A stretch of 64,000 bases of DNA from Macrostomum lignano (Eukaryota), in NCBI GenBank assembly GCA_002269645.1, contig NIVC01002860.1, positions 70,575 to 134,574 of the forward strand, read 5' to 3'. Below the pieces are notes generated by a model, which ran no database searches, was not told the DNA's origin, and saw only the letters and a program-made list of their open reading frames with translations. A program made the translations under genes and the position numbers. Position 1 is the stretch's first letter. Every line of letters begins with the position of its first letter. This document shows positions 43,501 through 46,038 of this stretch, one piece after another.

Positions 43501-46038
43501 TTCTACCTACTTGTCTCCCATTCTATCCGCTTGTCTCTCCTTAGGATTATCCATCTGATCCCATTCTATCTGTCTATTGTATCTGTCCATTCTATCTACT
43601 TGTCTCCCATTCTATCTACTTGTCTCCAATTCTATCTACTTATCTCCCATTCTATCTACTTATCTCCCATTCTATCTACTTGTCTCCCATTCTATCTACT
43701 TATCTCCCATTCTATCTACTTATCTCCCATTCTATCTACTTGTCTCCCATTCTATCTACTTGTCTCCCATTCTATCTACTTATCTCCCATTCTATCTACT
43801 TGTCTCCCATTCTATCTACTTATCTCCCATTCTATCTACTTGTCTCCCATTCTATCTACTTGTCTCCCATTCTATCTACTTGTCTCCCATTCTATCTACT
43901 TGTCTCCCATTCTATCTACTAAATCTCCCATTCTATCTACTTGTCTCCCATTCTATCTACTTGTCTCCCATTTTATCTACTTGTCTCCCATTTTATCTAC
44001 TTATCTCCCATTCTATCTACTTATCTCCCATTCTATCTACTTGTCTCCCATTCTATCTACTTGTCTCCCATTTTATCTACTTGTCTCCCATTCTATCTAC
44101 TTGTCTCCCATTCTATCTACTTGTCTCCCATTCTATCTACTTATCTCCCATTCTATCTACTTGTCTCCCATTCTATCTACTTATCTCCCATTCTATCTAC
44201 TTGTCTCCCATTCTATCTACTTGACTCTTATTCTATCTACTTGACTCTTATTCTATCTACTTGACTACCATTCTATCTCTTGTTTCTCCTGGGGATTATC
44301 CATCTGATCCCATTCTATCTGTCTATTGTATTCGCTGCAGGACGCGACGCGGGCACGCAGTTCAACAAGCAAAAGTACATTCAAGTAGGCGGCGCCGACC
44401 CCAGCCGGGACAGCCCGGCCCGCGCCATGCTGAACGCTGGGCTCGGCGGGGACGGCGTCGTCGGAGGCCAACAGAAGCGTCGGCGACGAAGGCGACGTCG
44501 GTGGCGGCGGCAGAAACGGCGCCGGCGCAGCGTCGGCGACTGGCCGCACTTCGAAGGCCAGCTGGTCGGCCTGGTGGTGAACGGCCTGCCGCTCAGCCGC
44601 ATCGCGGCAGGCGAGGAGGCCGCCGCCGACCTGGTCCGTCTGCGCACCAGCTGGCACGGCGGCGTCCGGCTGGTTGGCGCCGATTTTCGGCCGAATTTGG
44701 CCGGCTTCCCACCTGAGGACCGGCCGGCCTACTACAGGGATCCCCTGCTGCTGCCGGCCACTAGCCCGGCTGGGGTAAGCGTTGCAAGTTGCACACTATA
44801 TAGTGCGCATGCACTCACTATGACTAGTACGCTCGTGCACCTGTTTTAGTATGCATGTACTTTCTAAGTACGCGTGCACCTATTGAAGTGCGCATGCACT
44901 TTCAAAGTGCACGTGCACTTTTATTTTCCTTTGGAATCTCCTTGGAATTTCAACTCTAGATTCTGCTTGGAATTCTCTCTCTCTCGAAATTCCTCTGGGA
45001 TTACCGTCGTGGCTTCCCTGGGGATTCCCCTTCAGATTCTCGTCTGAATCCTGTTTAGGATTCTCTCTGAGAGGATCTGTGGGGATTCGCTTTGAAATTA
45101 TTTAGATTTCTCGTAGCATTACTATGAATAAAAAGCTTGTAGTCATTCTTTTAAACTAAAACGCACTTAACATGGAGCAACTTTATAGTTGGCCCGTCGT
45201 AAAAATAGTGCAAAAAGTCTGCTTTTTCCGCTCCCAGCCTGGCCCCACCGGCATCATCGGCCCGGCAGTCCAGTGCGCGTCTGCCGACGGCTGCGACACC
45301 CGCGACGGCCCCGGCAGCAGCGGAGGAAGCGGCATCATCGTCCCGGCGGACTACAGGACCGGCAACTCTGACGGGTGATCAGCTTTGGGACAGCTTTGGA
45401 GTTGGCTGAGTCAGGGTTGTAGTTGGCTGAGTCAGGGTTGGAGTTGGCTGAGTCAGGGTTGTAGTTGGCTGAGTCAGGGTTGGAGTTGGCTGAGTCAGGG
45501 TTGGAATTGGCTGAGTCAGGGTTGGAGTTGGCTGAGTCAGGGTTGGAGTTGGCTGAGTCGGGGTTGGAGTTGGCTGAGTCGGGTTGGAGTTGGCTGAGTC
45601 AGGGTTGGAGTTGGCTGAGTCAGGGTAGGAGTTGGCTGAGTCAGATTTAAGGCTCGAGGCGGTTGAGTTCACTGGTTCCACATCACCAATTCCAGAGATC
45701 CGGACGCGGCTCAGGCGACGAAGCCGCCGTCAACCAGCGGCGGGGACTCGAACGCTGAGGGCGGCGGCAAAGGCGGCAAGCAGCCTCAGTCAGCCAAGAT
45801 TGACATCTTCATCATCGTGATTGTCGCCGCGGCCGGAGCGGTGCTGCTGCTGGTGTTTTTCTGCCTGATCTACCGCTGCCGCAGCAAAAACGAAGGCTCG
45901 TACCGGGTGGACGAGACGCAGAACTTCGCCGAGGACCCGGCGCTGAAGCCGTTGCGGGGCGGCCTGCACCAGTCCAACGGCGACGTGCGGACTAAAATTG
46001 CGTCGAAGAAACGCGACATCAAGGAGTGGTACGTGTGA
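10436..46038 (+). CDS. Nrx-1: Neurexin (alpha-type, five LNS/LamG + two EGF, TM, PDZ-binding tail); join(10436..10511,14999..15145,17889..18079,23670..23819,28163..28525,29092..29581,32163..32386,36433..36547,39712..40055,40489..40869,41435..41672,42084..42277,43178..43349,44341..44774,45238..45374,45696..46038), 3999 nt = 1332 aa
   Basis: All 15 introns GT-AG with matching phases; total length divisible by 3. Motifs align with NRXN1/Nrx-1 as I recall them: [10 protein letters not shown]~[18 protein letters not shown]~[16 protein letters not shown]~[20 protein letters not shown]~[36 protein letters not shown]~[25 protein letters not shown]~DEGSYHVDESRNY, C-terminal KEWYV. Confidence 0.95.
10612..11070. 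repeat. Minisatellite, 12-bp GGGAGACACACT (neurexin intron 1, array A)
   Basis: Direct inspection. Confidence 0.9.
11089..11656. repeat. Minisatellite, 20/22-bp CAGCAGGAACAGAAGCAGAA(CA)
   Basis: Direct inspection. Confidence 0.9.
13185..14118. repeat. Minisatellite, 12-bp GGGAGACACACT (neurexin intron 1, array B)
   Basis: Same unit and orientation as 10612-11070. Confidence 0.9.
14999..15145 (+). CDS. Nrx-1: Neurexin exon 2 (start of LNS2)
   Basis: Polypyrimidine tract+CAG; [18 protein letters not shown]...[20 protein letters not shown]; donor GTGAGT; phase 1/1. Confidence 0.92.
15155..15945. repeat. Minisatellite, 21-bp GATGTGGGATTGAGAATCCGG (intron 2)
   Basis: Starts ~10 nt after the exon 2 donor. 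Confidence 0.9.
16892..17775. repeat. Minisatellite, 16/17-bp (C)CCCAGCTACCCCACAC
   Basis: Direct inspection. Confidence 0.9.
17889..18079 (+). CDS. Nrx-1: Neurexin exon 3 (LNS2)
   Basis: [14 protein letters not shown]...[17 protein letters not shown]; donor GTAAGC; phase 1/0. Confidence 0.93.
18602..18726. repeat. (CT)n microsatellite, ~60 units
   Basis: Direct inspection. Confidence 0.95.
19190..20200. repeat. Composite degenerate repeat based on TGTGTCCGGGTGT(CCGAA/TTGAC/TTGGC)
   Basis: Direct inspection. Confidence 0.85.
21062..21558. repeat. Minisatellite, 20-bp CTCTCTCATCCACTCTCTCC, near-perfect
   Basis: Direct inspection. Confidence 0.93.
22184..23392. repeat. Minisatellite, 22-bp CCATATTGGCTAGATTAGCAAT (~55 copies)
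   Basis: Period 22; reverse complement shares TGGATTGCTAATCTAGCC with the 40-bp family. Confidence 0.93.
23670..23819 (+). CDS. Nrx-1: Neurexin exon 4 (LNS2 end)
   Basis: VNVIFDD...LYLGG...FFKGCMRE; CAG acceptor, GTGAGA donor; phase 0/0. Confidence 0.93.
23855..24295. repeat. Minisatellite, 16-bp AACAGGACAACACAAC (intron 4)
   Basis: Direct inspection. Confidence 0.88.
25065..25432. repeat. Minisatellite, 30-32-bp CAGCTCATTCCCGACCC(C/T)TCAGATTCCCC(CT)A
   Basis: Direct inspection. Confidence 0.88.
26086..26675. repeat. (CT)n - 12-bp CTCTCCCTGTCT - (CT)n compound repeat
   Basis: Direct inspection. Confidence 0.9.
27248..28062. repeat. Minisatellite, 28-bp CACGTGA(C/A)TCTAATCCCAGTCAAAGAGT (~29 copies, E-box in most units)
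   Basis: Period 28 (27781/27809). Confidence 0.92.
28163..28525 (+). CDS. Nrx-1: Neurexin exon 5 (LNS2/LNS3)
   Basis: [37 protein letters not shown]; phase 0/0. Confidence 0.93.
28527..28890. repeat. Degenerate GAGAT(G/C)TGAGAT repeat (intron 5)
   Basis: Starts at the exon 5 donor. Confidence 0.8.
29092..29581 (+). CDS. Nrx-1: Neurexin exon 6 (LNS3 end + EGF)
   Basis: [55 protein letters not shown]; phase 0/1. Confidence 0.94.
29562..29694. repeat. 34-bp tandem repeat (4 copies) spanning the exon 6/intron 6 junction
   Basis: Unit TGGGGAGACCTGCTCGGACA|GTGAGTTCGGGTTG at 29562, 29596, 29630, 29664. Confidence 0.93.
29698..30691. repeat. Minisatellite, 19-21-bp TCCACACCGATGTGACCCC(C)
   Basis: Direct inspection. 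Confidence 0.92.
32163..32386 (+). CDS. Nrx-1: Neurexin exon 7 (LNS4 start)
   Basis: [31 protein letters not shown]; phase 1/0. Confidence 0.93.
32391..32952. repeat. Bipartite array: 19-bp GGGCGGATGGGGAACCTCA then 23-bp GGGCGGATGGGGAACCAAGGTGA (13 copies)
   Basis: Direct inspection; the 23-mer contains the ACCAAG|GTGAGG donor of exon 7. Confidence 0.92.
33365..34260. repeat. Purine-rich 13-bp GAGAGAGGGAGAT array with a higher-order unit containing AGACAGATGGAGAGAAGTGTACAGAAGAGGGT
   Basis: Direct inspection. Confidence 0.88.
36065..36365. repeat. Minisatellite, ~43-bp C-rich unit (~7 copies)
   Basis: Period ~43 (36181/36224). Confidence 0.82.
36433..36547 (+). CDS. Nrx-1: Neurexin exon 8 (LNS4)
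   Basis: [32 protein letters not shown]; CAG acceptor, GTGAGC donor; phase 0/1. Confidence 0.92.
37463..38160. repeat. Minisatellite, 10-bp TGTACATAGG with variants
   Basis: Direct inspection. Confidence 0.9.
39712..40055 (+). CDS. Nrx-1: Neurexin exon 9 (LNS4 end/LNS5 start)
   Basis: [30 protein letters not shown]; phase 1/0. Confidence 0.92.
40180..40435. repeat. Degenerate 8-bp AA(C/A)CCTAC repeat (intron 9)
   Basis: Direct inspection. Confidence 0.75.
40489..40869 (+). CDS. Nrx-1: Neurexin exon 10 (LNS5)
   Basis: [35 protein letters not shown]; phase 0/0. Confidence 0.93.
40900..41412. repeat. Minisatellite, 22-bp TGCAATCCGATTCACACAACCC (intron 10)
   Basis: Direct inspection. Confidence 0.86.
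41435..41672 (+). CDS. Nrx-1: Neurexin exon 11 (LNS5 end + EGF)
   Basis: [37 protein letters not shown]; phase 0/1. Confidence 0.93.
41712..42016. repeat. Minisatellite, 15-bp GTGA(G/C)AAGGGTTCAG (intron 11, ~20 copies)
   Basis: Direct inspection. Confidence 0.92.
42084..42277 (+). CDS. Nrx-1: Neurexin exon 12 (LNS6 start)
   Basis: [26 protein letters not shown] ~ PSTRADRLAIGFST..DYLELHI; phase 1/0. Confidence 0.93.
42301..43150. repeat. Minisatellite, 16-bp GAGTGACTCTTGATTG (intron 12)
   Basis: Direct inspection. Confidence 0.92.
43178..43349 (+). CDS. Nrx-1: Neurexin exon 13 (LNS6, ends at SS4-equivalent position)
   Basis: [32 protein letters not shown]; phase 0/1. Confidence 0.92.
43366..44276. 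repeat. Minisatellite, 20-bp T(G/A)TCTCCCATTCTATCTACT (intron 13)
   Basis: Direct inspection. Confidence 0.92.
44341..44774 (+). CDS. Nrx-1: Neurexin exon 14 (LNS6 end with Arg-rich insert)
   Basis: [31 protein letters not shown]; donor GTAAGC; phase 1/0. Confidence 0.92.
45238..45374 (+). CDS. Nrx-1: Neurexin exon 15 (stalk, Cys-loop)
   Basis: [32 protein letters not shown]..; phase 0/2, weak donor GTGATC whose phase matches exon 16. Confidence 0.82.
45400..45645. repeat. Minisatellite, 21-bp AGTTGGCTGAGTCAGGGTTGG (intron 15, ~12 copies)
   Basis: Direct inspection. Confidence 0.92.
45696..46038 (+). CDS. Nrx-1: Neurexin exon 16 (stalk, TM, cytoplasmic tail)
   Basis: [25 protein letters not shown]; [13 protein letters not shown]; ends [13 protein letters not shown] (class II PDZ ligand). 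AATAAA at ~46390. Confidence 0.95.

Follow-up and report, generated by a model that had tools for sequence, protein, structure and literature searches.

What does a tract of 18 residues, 16 of them basic, do inside a neurexin's LNS6 domain? The question is raised by a 64,000-nt stretch of genomic DNA from the flatworm Macrostomum lignano (hereafter the window; contig NIVC01002860.1 of assembly GCA_002269645.1), whose + strand holds a gene that its exons mark as an alpha-type neurexin. Neurexins are central synapse organisers, and the proteolysis described for them is juxtamembrane shedding by metalloproteases, not cleavage by convertases inside LNS6. In the gene studied here LNS6 carries a 52-residue enlarged loop in which R-X-[K/R]-R, the motif of furin-type convertases, occurs many times over. 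We propose, with a probability of about one in two, that this loop is a multibasic proprotein-convertase site giving rise to a two-chain neurexin, and that its extra run of eight arginines (Arg8) is a lineage-specific expansion.

The loop (44394–44549, + strand) connects strand KYIQVG to strand FEGQLVGL of LNS6, as placed by translation and by a phmmer alignment in which query residues 4–143 match NRXN1-alpha residues 1066–1201 and query residues 192–220 match residues 1204–1232. About 48 residues are extra relative to NRXN1, which has KEQGQP at the insert position; vertebrates as a group have 6–9 residues there (KEQGQP, RDRGRP, WERDRSRS). Within the loop, 16 of the 18 residues translated from 44475–44528 (+ strand) are basic. 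Lysine and arginine make up 10.4% of the remaining 966 predicted residues, so that the probability of at least 16 basic residues in 18 is ~2e-14, and the next-best 18-residue window of the predicted protein has 6. Outside this polybasic tract the predicted protein has no other occurrence of R-X-[K/R]-R. The in-frame translation reproduces exactly what a preliminary description of this locus had reported between IQVGG and FEGQL, and agrees with its count of basic residues; phmmer and Pfam likewise place the insert inside LNS6, and the codon count (CGG six times, CGA three times, CGT and CGC twice each, and AGG, AAG and AAA once each) bears out its remark that the arginine codons are mixed. The predicted principal convertase site, QKRRRR/SV (P6–P2', 44511–44534, + strand; the slash marks the cut), has a non-hydrophobic P1' residue (Ser) in the context RRQKRRRR/SV and lines up with sites in the paralogs described below. 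Its predicted scissile bond falls between codons 44526–44528 (R) and 44529–44531 (S), N-terminal to the transmembrane helix, in the ectodomain.

The window is genomic DNA of an animal; its exons are GC-rich and its introns filled with repeats. A protein search with the concatenated + strand exons returned Macrostomum lignano proteins as top matches, of which some bear the name neurexin: P0002 (BOX15_Mlig002077g3) covers the N-terminal portion of the window's own gene, and P0001, P0003 and P0004 are paralogs with ~46% identity in this search. Vertebrate neurexins came next, with 27–28% identity over ~73–75% of the query, neurexin-1a matching 73–75% of the length of the concatenated product at E ~1e-93. 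Several LNS exons and EGF-like Cys-rich modules lie upstream in order on the + strand, giving the LNS-EGF-LNS architecture, and the 3' part of the gene has canonical splice sites, matching phases and in-frame joins through to the stop codon. LNS6 itself is encoded on the + strand by exon A (42084–42277, VGNTTFEFG...DFILIAI; acceptor cccgcag/, donor ATC/gtgagc), which aligns to the start of NRXN1 LNS6; exon B (43178–43349, ...VILQP-G), supported by its splice sites and by the NRXN1 alignment; and exon C (44341–44774; acceptor tcgctgcag/, donor GGG/gtaagc), the single exon that holds the insert. The three-exon product matches NRXN1-alpha at E=1.3e-29 in a phmmer search of the PDB, with the best-scoring stretch in LNS6, and Pfam Laminin_G_2 matches LNS6 at 5.7e-16. 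A stalk exon follows (45238–45374, + strand), whose splice phases fit and which encodes a Cys-loop and a GSSGGSG motif, a candidate glycosaminoglycan attachment region. The last exon (45696–46038, + strand) encodes the single transmembrane helix, a short cytoplasmic tail and the stop; it matches the Syndecan-type transmembrane/cytoplasmic domain PF01034 at 4.4e-07, and the tail has a PDZ-binding-type C-terminal end, KEWYV here versus KEYYV in vertebrates. Together these features identify the gene as an M. lignano alpha-type neurexin.

The public NCBI model BOX15_Mlig002077g3 (687 residues) runs into an intron (window ~36.5–38.9 kb; 10001–41465 in the second genomic copy, L001, described below) and is without the LNS5, EGF3, LNS6, stalk and transmembrane exons. 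The 3' half of the gene is thus missing from the public annotation, and the insert is not to be modelled as an intron when it is added. The model of paralog P0004 ends as a frame-shifted translation of EGF3/LNS6. One LNS exon of the window gene (23670–23819, ...FFKGCMRE) has AT-rich surroundings and first- and second-position GC of 0.50/0.30, far below the other exons.

Vertebrate LNS6 and the window LNS6 are the same domain (E ~1e-29, template-modelling score (TM-score) 0.88–0.92), with the Asp and Asn of the Ca2+ site and the GR...FN element conserved, and both the insert and the vertebrate insert at splice site 4 (SS4) belong to loops close to the last third of LNS6. In vertebrates SS4 is an alternatively spliced exon of 30 residues that forms part of the preceding loop, on the ligand-binding rim, immediately before GRQLTIFN, whereas the window insert is constitutive, polybasic and inside an exon, ~18 residues downstream. 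We therefore rejected the identification of the insert with SS4, whose equivalent here is the junction of exons B and C (43349/44341), ~18 residues upstream of the exon-internal insert. The intron at that junction (43350–44340) is filled almost completely by a 20-mer minisatellite of ~45 copies (43366–44283), and no SS4-like alternative exon is visible in it.

We take 44394–44549 to be genuine coding sequence, not an intron, on several lines of evidence. When all in-frame GT...AG pairs in exon C were enumerated, none had a pyrimidine tract, and each either deletes the conserved VGG or FEGQ or keeps the poly-Arg; the real introns of the gene have pyrimidine-rich acceptors and GTRAG-type donors. 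Splicing from the donor at 44385, which the preliminary description had named as a way in which the segment could be lost from transcripts, was rejected, since no acceptor in frame with this donor is preceded by a pyrimidine tract, and its use would remove VGG or FEGQ. The insert is ~77% GC, the flanking introns 38–42%, and GC at the three codon positions is 0.85/0.59/0.89 in the N-terminal part of the insert versus 0.66/0.49/0.88 in the gene's exons. L001, a second genomic copy that is either a homeolog or an allele (GCA_002269645.1, NIVC01000272.1), is ~94–96% identical to the window in introns, with indels, and 99% identical in exon C. Its insert protein is identical and of the same length, and the two nucleotide differences at the insert are both synonymous, one in the codon just upstream and one inside the poly-Arg tract. 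Across 3099 nt of coding sequence, 16 of the codon changes between the copies are synonymous and 4 are nonsynonymous, from which we conclude that the gene is under purifying selection and not a pseudogene. The LNS5 exon (40495–40869, versus 43087–43467 in L001) has a 6-nt in-frame indel between the copies; the other compared exons are gap-free. P0051 (A0A1I8F6F3), a UniProt spliced model from another, indel-rich assembly, also retains the insert region, with the same residue count between NAGLGG and SVGDW as in the window gene.

The loop is enlarged in the M. lignano paralogs as well. P0001 reads IYVGS-MASMAQPDVADKAVTMLSVSGADGPRPRSRRGRRSAVRTEWSH-FEGYL, and P0003 and P0028 read IQIGR-LATAPKSGIRRRRRSSPAVADESQQY-FQGYL; all three M. 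lignano genes thus have an enlarged loop with a basic run of the R-X-[K/R]-R type, then Ser, then (A)V. The paralog sites RSRRGRR/SAV and RRRRR/SS are homologous to QKRRRR/SV of the window protein, with 5–7 basic residues in the paralog loops, and an upstream MLxxxxGxDG element is common to two of the three genes. Absence of the tract from homeologs, offered earlier as grounds for doubting it, is contradicted both by the identical insert in L001 and by the homologous polybasic loops of the two paralogs. At the P0001/P0004 locus, L002, the homologous loop lies in a single exon of lower GC content, where stop codons interrupt another frame within the loop, and for this reason we read the loop there as protein. 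L002 and the window locus have the same downstream neighbour, a phosphatidylinositol-transfer-protein gene on the minus strand, so the paralogs descend from a duplicated segment, and synteny is conserved from an old segmental or whole-genome duplication. The paralogs are ~50% identical to the window protein and the loop is homologous; the loop and its basic site are therefore older than that duplication.

Beyond Macrostomum, we ran a HMMER profile of the three LNS6 sequences on 1.84 billion representative proteins. In the LNS6-like domain of each match the stretch from ..xG to F.G was taken as the loop, and taxa were read from the clusters. R-X-[K/R]-R was present in the loop of 14 of the 67 non-Macrostomum cluster representatives (1147 loop residues in all). 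The rest of the same proteins held 24 motifs in 70,954 residues, which predicts 0.39 in the loops (Poisson P ~1e-17, a value that ignores shared ancestry). Among echinoderms the loops are SPQRRRRRRRN in Holothuria, SRRKRRV in Asterias and GRRKRRQ in Antedon; among hemichordates, SKRSKRA in Ptychodera and NRERRD in Saccoglossus. The annelid Owenia has HRGKRQ, the tunicate Phallusia TRNRRS and the nematode Caenorhabditis auriculariae KKRLRKRRRKS, and the motif is also present in the loop of the nematodes Steinernema, Trichostrongylus, Plectus, Panagrolaimus, Syphacia and Trichinella. The Holothuria cluster includes 6-kb Logan contigs with a poly-Arg loop at the same place, and because these encode ~1550 residues they must be spliced transcripts. 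Among the representatives parsed, R-X-[K/R]-R was not found in the loops of vertebrates (7–9 residues), insects (e.g. GGKWNNYTKRIERPF) or the nematode Auanema, nor in those of trematodes and one cestode, which are enlarged (18–26 residues) and not polybasic. Even with the limits of the statistic, the concentration of the motif at this one LNS6 loop is clear.

Loop length ranges from 7 to 53 residues among neurexins, and the window loop is the longest and most basic of all parsed. The other invertebrate polybasic loops share its position, after ..VGG and before F.G, and its R-X-[K/R]-R motif; they are 15–43 residues long with 5–11 basic residues, against 52–53 residues and 16 of 18 basic residues in the tract of the window loop. 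The window loop is thus not unique; it is the extreme of a trait that is widespread among invertebrate neurexins. The preliminary description knew of no such neurexin feature. Our literature search, in a limited collection, found no report of a convertase site or polybasic loop in neurexin LNS6, and to that extent the statement stands; the trait itself is widespread, with its extreme here. A convertase-type motif at this neurexin loop in several phyla, in extreme form in M. lignano, appears to be undescribed.

Where on the domain does the loop sit? AlphaFold, run with a nine-sequence alignment, gave a mean predicted local distance difference test (pLDDT) of 79.8 and a predicted template-modelling score of 0.80, with the core mostly above 80–95, and the top Foldseek matches were neurexin-1beta LNS domains (TM-score normalised to the target, 0.88–0.92). 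The insert (residues 141–191) has a pLDDT of 38–63 and one short helix, and is otherwise without secondary structure; the predicted strands on either side are the 11th (133–138) and the 12th (195–202). The insert is probably a disordered, flexible surface loop, one loop after the SS4 loop. D59 and N131 (LNS6 numbering), which do not vary across the alignment with vertebrate LNS6, correspond to D137 and N238 of neurexin-1beta, which are Ca2+-site residues (PMC2570956). Since N131 just precedes the six-residue strand that leads into the insert, we infer from strand order, not from measured coordinates, that the insert emerges at the far pole from the Ca2+/neuroligin-binding rim, where the domain termini and the stalk also lie. 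The earlier placement of the insert in a ligand-binding domain is thus right for the domain as a whole, and the strand geometry puts the loop itself away from the binding rim.

Under the convertase reading, a furin/kexin-type convertase would cut the loop in the secretory pathway, most plausibly at QKRRRR/SV because this site is aligned with the paralog sites, and carboxypeptidases would then trim the basic tail. Most of the ectodomain would remain attached to a small chain anchored in the membrane and comprising the last LNS6 beta-strands, the stalk, the transmembrane helix and the tail. The sequence of LNS6 here contains no cysteine, hence no disulfide, so the two chains could only be held together non-covalently. 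The recurrence of the motif at the same loop across phyla adds weight to this reading, and M. lignano neurons express a homolog of the convertase PC2 (PMC12435804).

Several points weigh against it. We found no paper reporting convertase cleavage in any neurexin, within the same limited collection, and many of the sequences compared across phyla are gene predictions. Searched against proteins, the spliced product from LNS6 to the C-terminus matched only the error-laden model P0051 and no transcript-derived protein, and exon C alone gave no match, so the coding status of the gene rests on indirect evidence. The low pLDDT of the insert is consistent with exposure and is no proof of accessibility. 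In insects, vertebrates and parasitic flatworms the loop is still basic or enlarged but lacks the consensus site, so its conserved function may not be cleavage. Finally, 16 basic residues far exceed the needs of a convertase site.

This last excess could have arisen without selection, if the tract is a neutral low-complexity expansion, CGN-rich sequence gained by duplication or slippage, in which only a short ancestral basic motif, if any, is functional. We consider this rather unlikely. The spread of loop lengths among neurexins suggests that insertions are tolerated here, and the paralogs manage with their few basic residues. The DNA may also hold traces of such an event. Roughly half of the Arg run looks like adjacent DNA, coding for Gly, Asp and Val, that was copied out of frame: 44443–44468, encoding ..GGDGVVGG, and 44480–44505, encoding RRRRRRRRW (both in the exon frame, + strand, offset 37 nt), are identical at 21 of 26 bases, with a score of 27 against 14.5±2.9 in shuffles, reached in 1 of 500 shuffles. 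An exact 12-mer, AGCGTCGGCGAC, is repeated at 44476–44487 and 44529–44540 and brackets the polybasic tract. Tentatively, the upstream Arg run, Arg8, may be a frame-shifted local duplication that arose beside an older QKRRRR/S site. A 53-nt deletion between the two 12-mers was rejected as the ancestral state, because the frame would shift, and a simple tandem trinucleotide repeat was rejected because Tandem Repeats Finder finds no array at the tract. The earlier statement that the tract is not a product of slippage accordingly holds for its mixed codons and the lack of an array, and less well for the half of the Arg run that looks like an out-of-frame local duplication. Neutral expansion has to contend with a tract whose length and protein sequence are identical in two copies with introns ~5% apart plus indels, with the same tract length in the gene model of a third assembly, and with purifying selection on the gene; long poly-Arg runs are, moreover, generally costly to translate.

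A second alternative, which we regard as unlikely, is that the polybasic loop is a module for binding glycosaminoglycans or acidic ligands, with heparan sulfate bound in cis (such as a chain presumed to sit on the protein's own stalk) or in trans, or another polyanion, instead of or before cleavage. The charge density of the tract is extreme, and the heparin-binding cluster patterns XBBBXXBX and XBBXBX are trivially satisfied by it, as sequence patterns alone. The Cys-loop and then SSGG of the stalk exon resemble the vertebrate neurexin ...CPSDDEDIDPCEPSSGG... region (CEPSSGG), so that the flatworm stalk may also carry a glycosaminoglycan chain, and by strand geometry the loop, the domain termini and the stalk share one pole. 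Even in vertebrates and insects the loop has a net basic charge but no consensus convertase site (GGRDRGRPF, GGKWNNYTKRIERPF), and the uncleaved RRKRR loop of laminin alpha2 adds to heparin affinity (PMC2755686). A heparan-sulfate-binding loop, if real, would tie in with the proteoglycan nature of neurexins. However, what is conserved in the three paralogs and across phyla is R-X-[K/R]-R, often followed by a small residue, and not net charge alone; an exposed multibasic loop of a secreted protein would in general be expected to be cut by ubiquitous convertases; and glycosaminoglycan attachment in the flatworm neurexin is only a candidate.

That the segment never reaches the mature protein, being an unrecognised or alternatively spliced intron or part of a pseudogene, is very improbable. 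In its favour, the protein searches gave no transcript-derived match, the NCBI model ends before LNS6, and GC-rich DNA keeps frames open by chance (one other frame of exon C is also open). Against it, no in-frame GT-AG pair with a pyrimidine tract spares both VGG and FEGQ, the segment resembles the exons and not the introns in composition, in a paralog the homologous loop is protein-coding where another frame has stops, the 16 synonymous versus 4 nonsynonymous changes speak against a pseudogene, and a transcript-like 6-kb Holothuria Logan contig encodes a poly-Arg loop at the same place.

Cleavage within a folded extracellular module has precedents. In Notch (S1), teneurin-2/Lasso and Gpr126 (the SEA-domain furin site), a convertase cuts such a module and the chains stay non-covalently joined; the logic proposed for the window neurexin is the same, although these proteins are not homologous to it and their modules have unrelated folds. 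Closer in fold is laminin alpha2 LG3, which has a long D-E loop with RRKRR that is cut by a furin-like protease, cutting lowering its heparin affinity (PMC2755686). Like the window LNS6, LG3 is an LG/LNS beta-sandwich with an unusually long, lineage-specific loop bearing a multibasic R-X-K/R-R motif. Its D-E loop lies on the top rim, whereas the neurexin insert lies between strands 11 and 12, by our reading of strand order at the opposite pole; because the loops differ, the resemblance is analogous and not positionally homologous. Laminin LG domains also have a C-terminal disulfide, whereas the window LNS6 is without cysteine, and cleavage is demonstrated in laminin alpha2 LG3 and inferred in the window neurexin. 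Both elements thus have known examples: convertase sites in loops of LG domains, and adhesion receptors that convertases process into two chains.

More tentatively still, a convertase site between LNS6 strands 11 and 12 might be an old bilaterian neurexin feature. Ambulacrarians, nematodes, a tunicate, an annelid and the early-branching flatworm Macrostomum would have kept it, while in vertebrates, in insects and in parasitic flatworms it would have degenerated or been lost; the mature presynaptic neurexins of many invertebrates would then be non-covalent two-chain receptors. We think this possible, with considerable doubt. The whole ligand-binding ectodomain of such neurexins could be freed by force or unfolding, as in Notch S1 or GAIN-type receptors, and the gene of M. 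lignano, to which Arg8 was added, would represent the extreme form. Were many invertebrate neurexins, including those of nematode, sea star and tunicate relatives of standard models, to mature as two non-covalent chains, their adhesion strength, shedding and signalling would need rethinking, as would the design of recombinant ectodomains and tagged alleles. M. lignano offers transgenesis and a toolkit with a pan-neuronal PC2 promoter (PMC12435804).

Elsewhere in the window, a GC-rich series of open reading frames at 59444–62173 on the + strand seems to represent a further gene, its first residues MGNELSAP being a possible N-myristoylation signal; Pfam gave no match for the four reading-frame products at 59.4–62.2 kb on this strand. 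About 30 copies of the 8-mer AACCCTAC lie at 40190–40431, inside a neurexin intron, and further intronic minisatellites occupy 40898–41415, 41711–42021, 42301–43153 and 45396–45644. The phosphatidylinositol-transfer-protein gene downstream of the neurexin (PF02121; minus strand, window ~47.9–53 kb) is also found at 50868–51465 of L001 and 31224–34755 of L002, and in the window one of its introns contains a giant minisatellite at ~48.2–52.6 kb.

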